Sequence record: NC_005260.1
DNA length: 64,000 nt
Strand: one strand, 5' to 3'
The notes below the pieces were generated by a model. The model saw only the letters and a program-made list of their open reading frames with translations. It was not told the origin of the DNA and ran no database searches. Each line of letters starts with the position of its first letter. The stretch's first letter is position 1. Shown here in pieces: positions 34,384 through 53,008 of the stretch. The position numbers and the translations under genes are program-made.

Positions 34384-34505
34384 TGGAGGGGAAGACGGGA
34401 CTCGAACCCGCGACCAACAGTTTGAATTTGCGTTTATTTGCGGTAAAGAATCTTAATCAGATTCCGCTTTGTGCGACTACTGCTCTACCACTGAGCTACT
34501 TCCCC
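34384..34505 (-). ncRNA. tRNA-shaped RNA with ~54-nt insert replacing the anticodon loop (GCAA-module RNA A)
   Basis: GGGGAAG/CTTCCCC-T-CCA acceptor, GCTC-AGTGGTA-GAGC D arm, GCGGG-TTCGAGT-CCCGT T arm; insert contains GAATCT/AGATTC hairpin then TTTACCGCAAAT. Confidence 0.8.
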
Positions 34506-46183: not shown

Positions 46184-46208
46184 ATTATTCTTTATTTAGT
46201 ACGCTATG

Positions 46209-46282
46209 ATGCGAGTGGTGGATTTGAACCACCGACCTTTAGCTTATGAGGCTAACGAGATACCGGACTTCTCCAACTCGCA
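46209..46282 (-). tRNA. tRNA-Met(CAT), initiator-like D arm, no encoded CCA
   Basis: TTAGC-CTCATAA-GCTAA; acceptor extended by a GCGCTATGA/TCATAGCGT stem. Confidence 0.8.
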
Positions 46283-46302
46283 TCATAGCGCACTAATCAA
46301 TT

Positions 46303-46378
46303 TGGTTCTCCGTATGGAATTCGAATCCATGTTACCGCCGTGAAAGGGCAGTGTCCTAGTCCACTAGACGAACGGAGA
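46303..46378 (-). tRNA. tRNA-Glu(TTC)
   Basis: CTGCC-CTTTCAC-GGCGG, CCA. Confidence 0.9.
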
Positions 46379-46382
46379 TCTG

Positions 46383-46622
46383 TCAATAAGCGAAACTAAA
46401 CAATCGTCTTTGTTTTGCTTTTAAGTCTTCTTCGACAACAGAGACATTATCACATGTTTCCGCAGTAGAGTAAACATCTTTTTGTTTTTCTTTTTCAGCG
46501 GCTTCCGCAGCTTTCTTTCTAGCAAGTGGACCAACGTTTTTCCACAACGGAGCGTCGTACCATGCTTTGCTACACTGATTACCCGAGCCACGATTGGCGC
46601 GAGCGTCTTGATCATTACTCAT
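46383..46622 (-). CDS. hypothetical late protein
   Basis: Start MSNDQD with AAGGAG RBS; CTAAATA at 46646-46652. Confidence 0.6.
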   Translation of the reverse strand: MSNDQDARANRGSGNQCSKAWYDAPLWKNVGPLARKKAAEAAEKEKQKDVYSTAETCDNVSVVEEDLKAKQRRLFSFAY

Positions 46623-46656
46623 ATAAACTCCTTTAATAGCAAGTCTATTTAGTACC

Positions 46657-46791
46657 AAATTTAAATGCACTGTCTAGATCCCCGCAGGTGGTTCCCACTC
46701 TACTAGCCTTTGTTTGCACAAGCTTGCGGCTCTTAGCTACATACGAGGGCTTATCTCGTCCAATGATGGTAAGGGCAATGCACTTAAATTT
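46657..46791 (-). ncRNA. structured RNA resembling a reduced tmRNA mRNA-like domain
   Basis: 13-bp closing stem, ACGAG/CTCGT hairpin with pseudoknot potential, GCA AAC AAA GGC TAG TAG mini-ORF. Confidence 0.45.
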
Positions 46792-46864
46792 GGTGGAGAC
46801 GACGGGATTTCCGCCCGTATCTCAGGTCCCAGTGACCTGCGATTATGAAGTTATCTACGTCCCC
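46791..46864 (-). ncRNA. tmRNA-like tRNA-like domain (alanine-type acceptor)
   Basis: GGGGACG/CGTCTCC-A-CCA with G3-U70, stemless D region, CAGGTC/GACCTG helix, atypical T loop CGGAAAT. Confidence 0.65.
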
Positions 46865-46869
46865 GAATC

Positions 46870-46944
46870 TGGTGGTGCATGGTAGATTCGAACTACCGAC
46901 CGACGGCGTATGAAACCGCAGCTCTACCACTGAGCTAATGCACC
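46870..46944 (-). tRNA. tRNA-Met(CAT), elongator
   Basis: GGTGCAT/ATGCACC, TT-CAT-AC, CCA. Confidence 0.85.
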
Positions 46945-47163
46945 AGACGGTATCCAGAATAACAGATACCGAGGCAATAATCAACCATTCGGTTGCAAAG
47001 AGATTTAACCAACAACAAACTACTCTCATTGTATGTCGTGTTGGAAGCACTTCTCAGATCGTCCGTGGTAAACATCACGCGCCCCGTCTGAGCCTAATCT
47101 ATTGCTTTTTTATAGCCTATCGCCACGCAACAAGTATATGGCCTATTGCTTGACTCGACTATT

Positions 47164-47240
47164 TGGTACGCCGCCCGGGACTCGAACCCGGAACCTATCG
47201 GTTAAAAGCCGATTGCTCTAAACCATTGAGCTAACAGCGC
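47164..47240 (-). tRNA. tRNA-Lys(TTT)
   Basis: ATCGG-CTTTTAA-CCGAT, CCA. Confidence 0.9.
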
Positions 47241-47246
47241 ATTGTT

Positions 47247-47320
47247 TGGCAGGGGATGTAAGAATCGAACTCACGTCAACGGATTTGGAATCCGCCGCAT
47301 AACCATTTTGCTAATCCCCT
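47247..47320 (-). tRNA. tRNA-Trp(CCA)
   Basis: GCGGA-TTCCAAA-TCCGT, G-CCA. Confidence 0.9.
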
Positions 47321-47326
47321 ATATTC

Positions 47327-47506
47327 TTACCAGCTATCAAAATCCGTAATGGGAACACTCTTTGCTCCATCTTTGACAGCTTTTGCACTAACCACAGTAC
47401 CGATTGATCCGCTTTCGTATTCAACATCAATCAGATTCGTTTCGTGCATCTGCATGAGTTCCATCATACGCTGAATCTCAAGCATTGTAAACCTTACTTT
47501 ATTCAT
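47327..47506 (-). CDS. hypothetical protein (59 aa, below ORF-track cutoff)
   Basis: Manual translation MNKVRFTMLEIQRMMELMQMH...DFDSW. Confidence 0.5.
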   Translation of the reverse strand: MNKVRFTMLEIQRMMELMQMHETNLIDVEYESGSIGTVVSAKAVKDGAKSVPITDFDSW

Positions 47507-47513
47507 TTTTCAC

Positions 47514-47723
47514 CTACAGAATAGGACTTTCGATTGTGACGTCAAGAACGGAATAATACGTGCTGTATTCCGAACCCATGTCGTCGTAATGTGCGCGAAC
47601 TTTACTTTCGGCATCGTCTATGTCTTCCGCTTCTACCAATTTAATGGTATCGAATGACTTGGATGATCCCATGTATTCGCTTTTCATATAACGTATCTTA
47701 GCAAGAAACAACATCGTTGTCAA
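47514..47723 (-). CDS. hypothetical protein
   Basis: ORF track 69 aa. Confidence 0.6.
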   Translation of the reverse strand: MTTMLFLAKIRYMKSEYMGSSKSFDTIKLVEAEDIDDAESKVRAHYDDMGSEYSTYYSVLDVTIESPIL

Positions 47724-48120
47724 CCTTTAACGTATAGATTTTCGAAGTGTGTCCAGTCATAGGCTGAACTCCGCAAATTTCCTCAGCAATCAGCTTGGGA
47801 ACAAATCTAGGAACAACTGTGAGTCTATCGAAAATCGCTTGATTTCCTTTATCCCAGTTCTGTTGTCTTTTGATCGCCGCAATCTGTGTTGACTTGATAT
47901 CAAGTTCTTCCGCTTTCAGAAGCTCGAATTCTAAGTCATTGCTATAGGTAACACCATACGCGATTACGATATCAAAGTCAATAGGACATTCAGGCGTTTC
48001 GGTATATCTAATGATCTGTCTCAGTGTTCGAACATCATCTTGAAACCAACCGCAGTTGATAAAGCATTGTCCGACACGTTCGCCGTTCTTCATGAACAGC
48101 GCCCAACTAGGTGCGCTCAT
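47698..48120 (-). CDS. hypothetical protein
   Basis: ORF track 140 aa. Confidence 0.65.
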   Translation of the reverse strand: MSAPSWALFMKNGERVGQCFINCGWFQDDVRTLRQIIRYTETPECPIDFDIVIAYGVTYSNDLEFELLKAEELDIKSTQIAAIKRQQNWDKGNQAIFDRLTVVPRFVPKLIAEEICGVQPMTGHTSKIYTLKVDNDVVSC

Positions 48121-48493: not shown

Positions 48494-48569
48494 TGGTGGA
48501 GAAAATGGGACTCGAACCCACGACCCCCAGCTTGCAAGGCTAGTGCTCTCCCATCTGAGCTATTTCCCC
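48494..48569 (-). tRNA. tRNA-Ala(TGC)
   Basis: G3-U70, CT-TGC-AA, CCA. Confidence 0.92.
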
Positions 48570-52906: not shown

Positions 52907-53008
52907 TCCGGGTGGCGGGACTCGAACCCACAACCCACTGCTTCTTCTGTACTCTCGTTAGAAAGCACAGGAGAAGGCAGATGCGCTATCCTGTTGCGCC
53001 ACACCCGG
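52907..53008 (-). tRNA. tRNA-Arg(TCT)-like gene with a 28-nt insertion in the anticodon loop
   Basis: CCGGGTG/CACCCGG, GCGC D stem, CTGC-CTTCT[28 nt]AA-GCAG, T arm; no CCA, 7-bp acceptor extension. Confidence 0.7.

Follow-up and report, generated by a model that had tools for sequence, protein, structure and literature searches.

The closest described counterparts of the RNAs considered here are transfer-messenger RNAs (tmRNAs) that consist of the tRNA-like domain (TLD) only. Mycobacteriophage DS6A carries such a molecule, which is accepted by the tmRNA Website as 'standard, no CDS' (coding sequence) (PMC4131195, PMC11915505). In the account given in PMC11915505, CDS-less tmRNAs also occur in jakobid mitochondria and some plastids, where they are believed to cooperate with SmpB in the absence of a tag template. 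Mao et al. (2009), as summarised in PMC4131195, reported that the tmRNA of E. coli is inhibited by a molecule made of the TLD only, and titration of SmpB may be the cause. When RefSeq viruses were searched exhaustively in 2014, ssrA turned up only in mycobacteriophages, Bacillus phage G and DS6A being added from outside that dataset (PMC4131195). Here we describe two adjoining RNA elements in a 64,000-nt stretch of sequence record NC_005260.1 (the window), which matches Aeromonas phage Aeh1, a T4-like phage of the Straboviridae (Cinqassovirus), at 100% identity. Both are on the minus strand within a cluster of at least 23 tRNA genes, and neither is annotated in Aeh1 or in any relative record examined. 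One is a 74-nt tRNA-like RNA of alanine type; the other, which we call unit 2, is a structured RNA directly 3' of it. An initial annotation had taken the pair for a tmRNA split into a TLD and an mRNA-like domain (MLD). From the comparison of related phages we are confident, if short of certain, that each is an independent module and that together they are no split tmRNA. The fuller statement, that the locus holds two independent, co-transcribed non-coding RNAs of which one is a tRNA mimic and the other a boundary element, we regard as evenly poised.

The DS6A molecule and the Aeh1 RNA are alike in being phage-encoded, 74–83 nt long and terminated by NCCA or a near variant; both join an alanine acceptor with G3·U70 to a short helix that stands for P2 and the MLD, and both lack a D stem and a tag frame. 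DS6A differs in keeping the tmRNA D-loop (UGG...CGAC), the P2a helix and a canonical GUUCGAUUC T-loop. It is also a temperate siphovirus of an actinobacterium, whereas the Aeh1-type phages are lytic and T4-like, have a γ-proteobacterial host and carry the RNA inside a tRNA cluster. The organellar CDS-less tmRNAs resemble the 74-nt RNA in consisting of a tRNA-like domain alone; they are permuted or organellar molecules with recognisable tmRNA homology and a dedicated SmpB, whereas homology is not demonstrable for the 74-nt RNA and there is no phage SmpB to go with it. The searchable literature yielded no mention of a tmRNA or tRNA-like RNA from these phages, and the text supplements of the 2025 tmRNA database paper list no phage entries; the database itself may contain the element.

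The 74-nt RNA and its kinship

The features first read from the minus strand, namely a GGGGACG/CGUCUCC stem, G3·U70, A73, CCA, the absence of a D stem, a 5-nt loop and a deviant T loop, are all present (Table 1). The connector that replaces the D arm is mostly invariant in sequence (UAG.UAA...C18), and the central helix closes with a C-G pair on its 5-nt loop, with no 7-nt anticodon loop. The loop of the T-arm analogue is non-canonical (YGGAAAU; UAGUAAGC(C) in the Ahp1 clade) and without the UUCRANY consensus. Since it has neither an anticodon loop nor a D stem, the 74-nt RNA cannot decode.

The RNA is conserved in nine phage isolates and three metagenome contigs. It is exactly 74 nt long in eight Aeh1-like phages from three genera (PX29, AsFcp_1, AsFcp_2, phiAS5, phiWae14, Ah1, avDM12 and Aeh1) and in the more distant Ahp1_CNU copy, and 75 nt long in three Ahp1-like metagenome contigs. 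The explicit structure leaves 97% of the alignment cells paired, compared with 36–55% when the 3' partners are slid, and each of the three helices contains one compensatory pair. In the acceptor stem, which is 100% paired, G4-C69 becomes A-U in the Ahp1 clade; in the central helix (97% paired) A27-U41 becomes U-A and G29-C39 alternates with G·U; in the T stem G50-C60 becomes A-U. Position 3·70 is G·U in 8/8 distinct sequences from two clades, although the adjacent G4-C69 changes. The two clades that carry the RNA differ at about 20% of positions, with G3·U70 and ACCA unchanged. Relatives are 95–99% identical to Aeh1 in this RNA, against only 69–89% at synonymous third positions of the gene next to it. 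Taken as comparative evidence, these data mark the 74-nt RNA as a genuine tRNA-like molecule under constraint. Pattern searches retrieved from IMG/VR only isolates already known, three Ahp1-like contigs and nothing more from metagenomes, and no match from 185,579 species genomes. A ninth relative, AsFcp_4, was left unscored on account of a run of Ns at the 74-nt RNA. In its record (L009, MH791407.1 1-1335, labelled 'UNVERIFIED') Ns replace the 3' end of the 74-nt RNA and all of unit 2, and the sequence is then joined straight to the downstream open reading frame (ORF); the run is an assembly gap and not a natural deletion.

Standard tools do not recognise the element. ARAGORN detected no tmRNA in the window, Rfam at gathering thresholds returned only tRNAs from it, the 74-nt RNA is called as a tRNA by neither ARAGORN nor RF00005 (29 bits), and all complete E. 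coli genomes were negative when the whole feature was compared with them by blastn. The tmRNA model RF00023 scores the Aeh1 RNA at 17.1 bits against a gathering score of 47, the yardstick being the DS6A TLD-only tmRNA at 43.2 bits, and the Ahp1_CNU copy has no match at E<=10. The alignment to RF00023 runs end to end through acceptor stem and T arm with the MLD deleted; its match is confined to the acceptor stem, T stem and ACCA, the D region being unaligned. A covariance model of the 74-nt RNA, R1, gives its own Aeh1 RNA 104.5 bits, phage tRNA-Ala genes 24.3 and 23.2, the DS6A TLD 20.4 and E. coli ssrA 20.0. Thus, among the retrieved sequences over which R1 and the corresponding unit-2 model R2 were run, tRNA-Ala genes are the top non-self matches, with a likeness limited to acceptor and T stems. 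In comparison with Aeromonadaceae tmRNAs the sole significant similarity is that of the 3' 20 nt, equalled in only 1–2 of 500 shuffles.

Judged by its parts, the 74-nt RNA has the alanine acceptor identity of a tmRNA TLD (a 7-bp stem with G3·U70, discriminator A and CCA), no D stem, and an anticodon-free helix in place of the anticodon arm. It lacks the conserved D-loop (..GG..UUCGAC) and the canonical T-loop (GUUCRANYC) that form the SmpB-docking elbow. It equally lacks what defines a canonical tRNA-Ala: the cloverleaf with a D arm, the 7-nt anticodon loop with U33, and the TΨC loop. In the alanine-type TLD that had been proposed, the architecture therefore stands, and on sequence grounds the RNA may be called weakly tmRNA-like; the evidence does not establish kinship with tmRNA over kinship with tRNA-Ala.

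The ranking of tRNA-Ala genes first, with the resemblance concentrated in just those acceptor and T stems that RNase P requires, is in keeping with a degenerate tRNA-Ala that has been retained as RNase P 'punctuation' of the polycistronic transcript, neither charged nor active in trans. The non-canonical T-loop and the position between a tRNA and an mRNA leader also fit this account. We nevertheless consider it quite unlikely: the connector, central helix (10 bp) and pentaloop are as conserved as the acceptor stem, with compensatory changes, in two clades; G3·U70 never becomes Watson-Crick though the neighbouring pair changes; and ACCA is invariant even in the Ahp1 clade, where the P1 helix of unit 2 does not need it.

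Unit 2 and the proposal of a split tmRNA

Unit 2 was originally described as a 135-nt unit closed by its own 13-bp stem. The closing stem is confirmed, but it is longer, 19 bp, and the unit spans 46794..46654. This stem, P1, begins with the discriminator and CCA of the 74-nt RNA itself, ACCA pairing with UGGU as the outermost 4 bp. In the Aeh1 clade and ZPAH1, which differ largely in sequence here, P1 has 19 uninterrupted base pairs; 17–18 bp can be counted by eye in the Ahp1 clade. Of 15 in-register pairs nine are compensatory, and 99.5% of the cells are paired. Over the three-clade alignment as a whole, the structure comprises 40 bp with 97.1% of cells paired (27–42% when slid); 18 of these pairs are compensatory, and the covariation score of 0.449, compared with 0.161 for shuffles, was reached by 0/500 of them. 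Nested pair counts on this alignment (A7) lean towards the model that built it; a MAFFT-based count and the separate comparison of P1 agree with them. The pseudoknot was excluded from that building model, and it is 100% paired, with C-G replaced by A-U in the Ahp1 clade (AGCA with UGCU). The closing pair of hairpin Hb changes from A-U to G-C in three sequences. The unpaired segments CCCUWAC, CCGCAAG and CAAAKGCUA and a 7-nt internal loop are invariant, CCGCAAG in all three clades. The region with its flanks folds at z = −4.8, and none of the 4227 covariance models of Rfam 15 matches unit 2 at E<=10 in Aeh1 or Ahp1_CNU. The comparative support is strong, and it indicates that unit 2 is a new structured RNA family. 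An alifold hairpin around the supposed tag (AGCUU...AGGCU) was rejected, being absent in ZPAH1.

A weak blastn match led to the unit-2 homolog in ZPAH1 and Aswh_1 (Ishigurovirus). R2, built from the Aeh1 and ZPAH1 clades, scores the ZPAH1/Aswh_1 homologs at about 132 bits and the Ahp1_CNU clade at about 90 bits (E ~1e-21). In ZPAH1 and Aswh_1 unit 2 directly follows an ordinary tRNA-Leu(UAA), and no 74-nt RNA was found within ±1.5 kb with filters off. In the Ahp1_CNU clade unit 2 lies about 600 nt downstream of the 74-nt RNA, after a tRNA-Met, a small ORF and a UUCG hairpin. It is because unit 2 can follow a tRNA-Leu or an ORF region without an adjacent 74-nt RNA that we favour two independent modules; that the two are neighbours in Aeh1 is peculiar to one clade and does not reflect a functional pairing. 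Unit 2 occurs once per genome, and two patterns from its core retrieved from IMG/VR only isolates already known.

The case for a split tmRNA, in which a self-contained TLD and a mini-MLD acting in trans would add the tag A-ANKG or perform degron-free rescue, rested on more than architecture and the RF00023 alignment. The strings GCA AAC AAA GGC UAG UAG and CGGGGAUCUAGA and the ACGAG/CUCGU hairpin are all in unit 2. Four short motifs of unit 2 are present, in collinear order, in E. coli ssrA, as had been suggested, and all three clades retain a stop codon, UAG or UAA, in frame at one and the same position. A restricted alignment of unit 2 with ssrA was reached by only 23/2000 shuffles; its window was picked post hoc, after the motifs had been seen, and it is not counted here. 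In unbiased Smith-Waterman comparisons with E. coli ssrA, 68/500 and 79–281/1000 shuffles were as good, and against Aeromonadaceae tmRNAs unit 2 scored at the shuffle mean (314–345/500 as good). Three of the four motifs, CCUCGUA, GCCGCAA and CGGGGAUC, are absent from the two Aeromonadaceae tmRNAs recovered. An nhmmer profile of 108 distinct γ-proteobacterial tmRNAs, taken from 120 ssrA loci including two Aeromonadaceae metagenome-assembled genomes, found nothing with filters off in unit 2 of Aeh1, PX29, phiAS5 or phiWae14, and nothing just downstream of the Ahp1_CNU 74-nt RNA. The two-piece models RF01849-51 and the permuted tmRNA models gave no match to the feature at E<=10, so that the check proposed with RF00023 and these models yields only the sub-threshold score given above.

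The tag fares no better. The 'resume codon' GCA is AUA in ZPAH1, and GGC is UGC in the Ahp1 clade (Gly to Cys), where it covaries with the Hb loop; the change therefore reflects a constraint of RNA pairing and not of coding. Only sequences of the Aeh1 and PX29 types have the tandem stop (UAG UCA stands there in the phiAS5 type), and the TAGA of CGGGGAUCUAGA is GCGA in most relatives. No credible ORF exists in the element on either strand, and 1-nt indels separate relatives. The pairing of the Hb loop with GCUUGU that had been suggested is likewise not conserved (the segment is GAAGAC in ZPAH1); the loop pairs with GGCU, and the bases assigned to the tag thus belong to a covarying pseudoknot. 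Neither the profile nor the covariance models detect any likeness to PK1, a resume codon or a tag ORF. Unit 2 is, on this comparison, not derived from tmRNA.

The organisation of the locus points the same way. The two-piece tmRNAs of α- and β-proteobacteria and cyanobacteria (RF01849-51, RF04321) likewise consist of adjacent RNA segments of which one is CCA-ended. In permuted tmRNA genes, the T arm and 3' acceptor strand alone make up the first piece; the 5' acceptor strand opens the second, and acceptor and P2 helices join both. The first piece in Aeh1 is, in contrast, a complete tRNA-like fold with both acceptor strands, and the second closes on itself. To our knowledge, every two-piece tmRNA described so far depends on these helices to stay together, whereas the two Aeh1 RNAs have no tether after maturation has freed the CCA. 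We consider the split tmRNA largely refuted and scarcely credible.

Possible roles of the two RNAs

We propose that the 74-nt RNA would be released by RNase P and 3' trimming, like its neighbours, and would end in ACCA; RNase P needs no more than an acceptor stem and a T arm. Minihelices with G3·U70 and A73 are substrates of alanyl-tRNA synthetase (AlaRS), and since G3·U70, A73 and the 7-bp acceptor stem make up the alanine identity set, the host AlaRS would be expected to charge the RNA with alanine. It could then compete for the host's SmpB, AlaRS and EF-Tu, all of which recognise a tRNA-Ala or tmRNA by its acceptor/T-arm half, and such competition may damp or redirect host trans-translation in infection. 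Some alanine-charged, non-decoding role seems on balance probable from the sequence features. An SmpB decoy is the leading specific mechanism, because a TLD-only molecule inhibits tmRNA in E. coli; by this analogy, an action of the TLD type on SmpB is possible, if somewhat doubtful, and our confidence in it is kept low because the D-loop and T-loop consensus is missing.

That missing consensus suits another reading, which shares the structural evidence: the RNA may be charged or CCA-ended and yet be aimed elsewhere than at SmpB, as a decoy or sponge for an acceptor-end factor or defence (tRNA 3'-end-modifying or acceptor-stem-cleaving toxins would be examples), for AlaRS, or as a non-ribosomal alanine donor. 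That large sets of phage tRNAs counter defences directed at tRNA is a widely discussed idea. We think the present reading unlikely; no candidate partner was identified in the window or the relatives, no toxin or transferase gene is linked to the RNA, and the argument is purely inferential.

For unit 2 we suggest, tentatively and on comparative grounds, that it marks the boundary between tRNA and mRNA and serves there in processing. The 3' end of P1 lies about 10–32 nt from the start (AUG) of the next ORF in all three clades; in Ahp1_CNU the Shine-Dalgarno sequence GGAGG is within 3 nt of P1. Where a tRNA or 74-nt RNA stands upstream, it contributes its CCA to the outer pairs of P1. Helices cut by RNase III, such as T7 R1.1-type sites and the flanking helices of rRNA, are like P1 in being long, near-perfect helices that flank structured RNA between transcript units, and in having an asymmetric internal loop adjoining the helix. 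P1 offers about two turns of uninterrupted helix, the length of an RNase III site. A double-strand-specific RNase such as RNase III would cut at this predicted site, freeing the upstream CCA and setting the 5' end of the downstream message, while the pseudoknotted invariant core probably binds a protein or ligand that tunes cleavage or translation of the next ORF. Classical RNase III sites differ in being simple hairpins, whereas the helix of unit 2 recruits the CCA of the upstream tRNA and surrounds a conserved core of about 100 nt that is four-way and pseudoknotted.

The same invariant unpaired segments and pseudoknot are typical of binding pockets or catalytic cores, and unit 2 is always just 5' of an ORF start and single in each genome. 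It may accordingly not be mainly a processing element at all, but control the downstream ORF in cis as a ligand- or protein-binding riboswitch or translational operator, act in trans as a stable small RNA, or generate the upstream 3' end by self-cleavage; a stable-RNA precursor from the T4 tRNA cluster reportedly cleaves itself, as described in the 1980s. This we judge somewhat unlikely. The perfect P1 of 17–19 bp is far longer than a riboswitch P1 and there is no obvious switching platform, downstream genes are non-homologous across clades, no Rfam riboswitch or ribozyme matches, and the Ahp1 clade has no upstream tRNA to mature.

Several observations weigh against our proposal of a charged mimic and a boundary element. 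The D region and T-loop of the 74-nt RNA are without the tmRNA consensus that DS6A keeps, so that recognition by SmpB is doubtful, and a search for SmpB encoded by Aeromonas phages found none. As tmRNA TLDs do not outscore tRNA-Ala genes under R1, descent from tRNA-Ala appears equally possible. In the primary transcript of the Aeh1 clade the CCA is buried in the 19-bp helix, and charging would therefore be blocked without cleavage. The pairing of CCA into P1 is absent in the Ahp1 clade, and the genes downstream of unit 2 differ between clades. An RNase III site needs only a plain hairpin, and the conserved core argues for something more specific. The interior of unit 2 alone folds no better thermodynamically than shuffled sequence (z ~0). 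Finally, the known members make up three clades, all of T4-like Aeromonas phages, and represent few independent evolutionary events. The burial of CCA could itself be given a function, as a timed switch on ribosome rescue encoded by the phage: the 19-bp helix would mask the CCA until a nuclease cut, after which the alanine-charged 74-nt RNA would enter trans-translation via host SmpB as a blocker or tag-free rescuer. We regard this combination as very unlikely.

Two further associations were tried and given up. A CCA pairing in the Ahp1 clade (ACCAGAU/AUCUGGU) was dropped, since metagenome variants compensate a different hairpin when judged by eye. Unit 2 is associated with phrog_5438 in two clades but not in ZPAH1 or CC2: the Ahp1 clade has an unrelated 69-aa ORF first after unit 2 and then a phrog_5438 homolog, and the ZPAH1 proteins downstream of unit 2 are unrelated to Aeh1p184 or the Ahp1-clade ORFs.

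Genomic setting and wider relevance

A simple consensus scan found no promoter or terminator within the element or between the modules, which makes co-transcription with the tRNAs probable. Of promoter-like sites the scan found two in 46200-47400, one upstream of tRNA-Met and one inside Aeh1p184, a number no higher than chance predicts. The features of the locus are collected in Table 1; the ordinary tRNA-Ala that had been noted separately is indeed present.

Table 1. Coordinates of the two RNA elements, their parts and neighbouring genes in the window
Feature	Position	Strand	Remarks
tRNA-Met(CAU)	46870..46944	(-)	upstream neighbour; 5 nt from 5' end of 74-nt RNA
74-nt alanine-type anticodon-less tRNA mimic ('TLD-like RNA')	46791..46864	(-)	RNA position i = window 46865 - i
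Acceptor stem, 5' strand (nt 1-7, GGGGACG)	46858..46864	(-)	partner nt 64-70 CGUCUCC, 46795-46801
G3·U70	46862 and 46797	(-)
Single-stranded connector, 14 nt (nt 8-21)	46844..46857	(-)	replaces D arm; no conserved pairing
Central helix (nt 22-46)	46819..46843	(-)	3 bp, G25·A43 mismatch, 6 bp; pentaloop ACUGG
T-arm analogue (nt 47-63)	46802..46818	(-)	5-bp stem; loop CGGAAAU in Aeh1
A73-equivalent discriminator and CCA	46791..46794	(-)	invariant in every copy; pairs with UGGU 46654-46657
Unit 2, structured RNA of ~141 nt	46654..46794	(-)	P1, P1b, three hairpins, pseudoknot; overlaps 74-nt RNA by 4 nt
P1, 5' strand ACCAAAUUUAAGUGCAUUG	46776..46794	(-)	pairs with 46654-46672 CAGUGCAUUUAAAUUUGGU; 19 uninterrupted bp
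P1b of unit 2			CCCU with GGGG
Hairpin Hb (ACGAG-AUAAGCC-CUCGU)	46743..46759	(-)	loop AGCC 46748-46751 pairs with GGCU 46705-46708 (pseudoknot)
Hairpin Hc	46720..46732	(-)	invariant pentaloop CGCAA; 2/4 stem pairs compensatory
Supposed tag, GCA AAC AAA GGC UAG UAG	46700..46717	(-)	not an ORF; GGCU in pseudoknot, GUAG = 5' strand of He
Hairpin He (GUAG-A-GUGG GAA CCAC CUGC)	46684..46703	(-)	5/8 pairs compensatory across clades
ORF Aeh1p184	46383..46622	(-)	79 aa, phrog_5438, function unknown; AUG ~32 nt past P1 end, same orientation
Ordinary tRNA-Ala	48494-48569		separate gene, present in window

The surroundings hold further features of their own. All relatives of Aeh1 have a 40-nt insert between tRNA-Met and the 74-nt RNA (L003:690-736, with equivalents in L002 and L004-L008; columns 24-66 of alignment A1), which folds as a hairpin GCUUAAAC...GUUUAAGC; Aeh1 alone is without it and has only the 5-nt spacing there. 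Within the tRNA cluster of Aeh1, at 47698-48120 (-), Aeh1p187 is a 140-aa ORF annotated as 'major head protein, similar to T4 gp23'; oddly placed, it resembles a gene fragment or small paralog. Two tRNA-like genes at 34387-34505 (-) and 52907-53008 (-), scoring 53.0 and 49.8 bits with RF00005, are missed by default ARAGORN. With introns allowed, ARAGORN places inserts of 49 and 26 nt, respectively, in their anticodon regions. The former is separated from the main tRNA cluster by about 9 kb, and its D and T arms are normal. These genes may be intron-bearing tRNAs or further tRNA mimics.

In Ahp1_CNU, the spacer of about 340 nt after the 74-nt RNA contains a segment (L010:966-1036) that is 86–95% identical to unannotated tRNA-cluster sequence in about 30 other phages. 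They include the T4-like CC2, ZPAH1 and AS-szw, the T5-like Akh-2 and AhSzw-1 (Demerecviridae), and Citrobacter phage Ci1. By its sequence conservation this looks like another conserved, unannotated element common to phage families. An Ahp1-like metagenome contig (L018:5540-6334 (+)) encodes, after the phrog_5438 homolog, a 264-aa ORF with a GIY-YIG-type N-terminus like that of Seg homing endonucleases, which fits mobile-element traffic reshuffling these tRNA clusters.

Unexplained stable RNAs are also known from T4 itself. The species 1 and 2 RNAs (rnaC and rnaD) resemble the Aeh1 elements in lying directly after a tRNA in a T4-type tRNA cluster; rnaC has a tRNA-like T arm and an acceptor-like stem, and rnaD a CACCA end. 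They differ in having no G3·U70 and in their sizes and folds. Homology to them was rejected: R1 gives 13.7 bits (E 0.84) on rnaC, from the T arm only, and R2 finds nothing in the T4 locus. The T arm of rnaC (L011:1409-1547 (-)) is canonical, CCGGGUUCGAAUCCCGG, next to the acceptor-like stem, and its alignment to the tRNA-Sec model is weak at 17.5 bits.

Within the papers that could be searched, a phage TLD-only tmRNA is on record only in a temperate mycobacteriophage. Should the 74-nt RNA be charged and act on SmpB or AlaRS, no mimic of this kind would have been reported before from a lytic phage with a Gram-negative host, and the RNA would offer a simple natural tool for studying the role of trans-translation during infection. 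A helix that, like that of unit 2, pairs with the CCA of the preceding tRNA is unusual and could couple maturation of a tRNA 3' end to expression of the next gene. Unit 2 may in this way bear on the purpose of the unexplained stable RNAs found in T4-type tRNA clusters.

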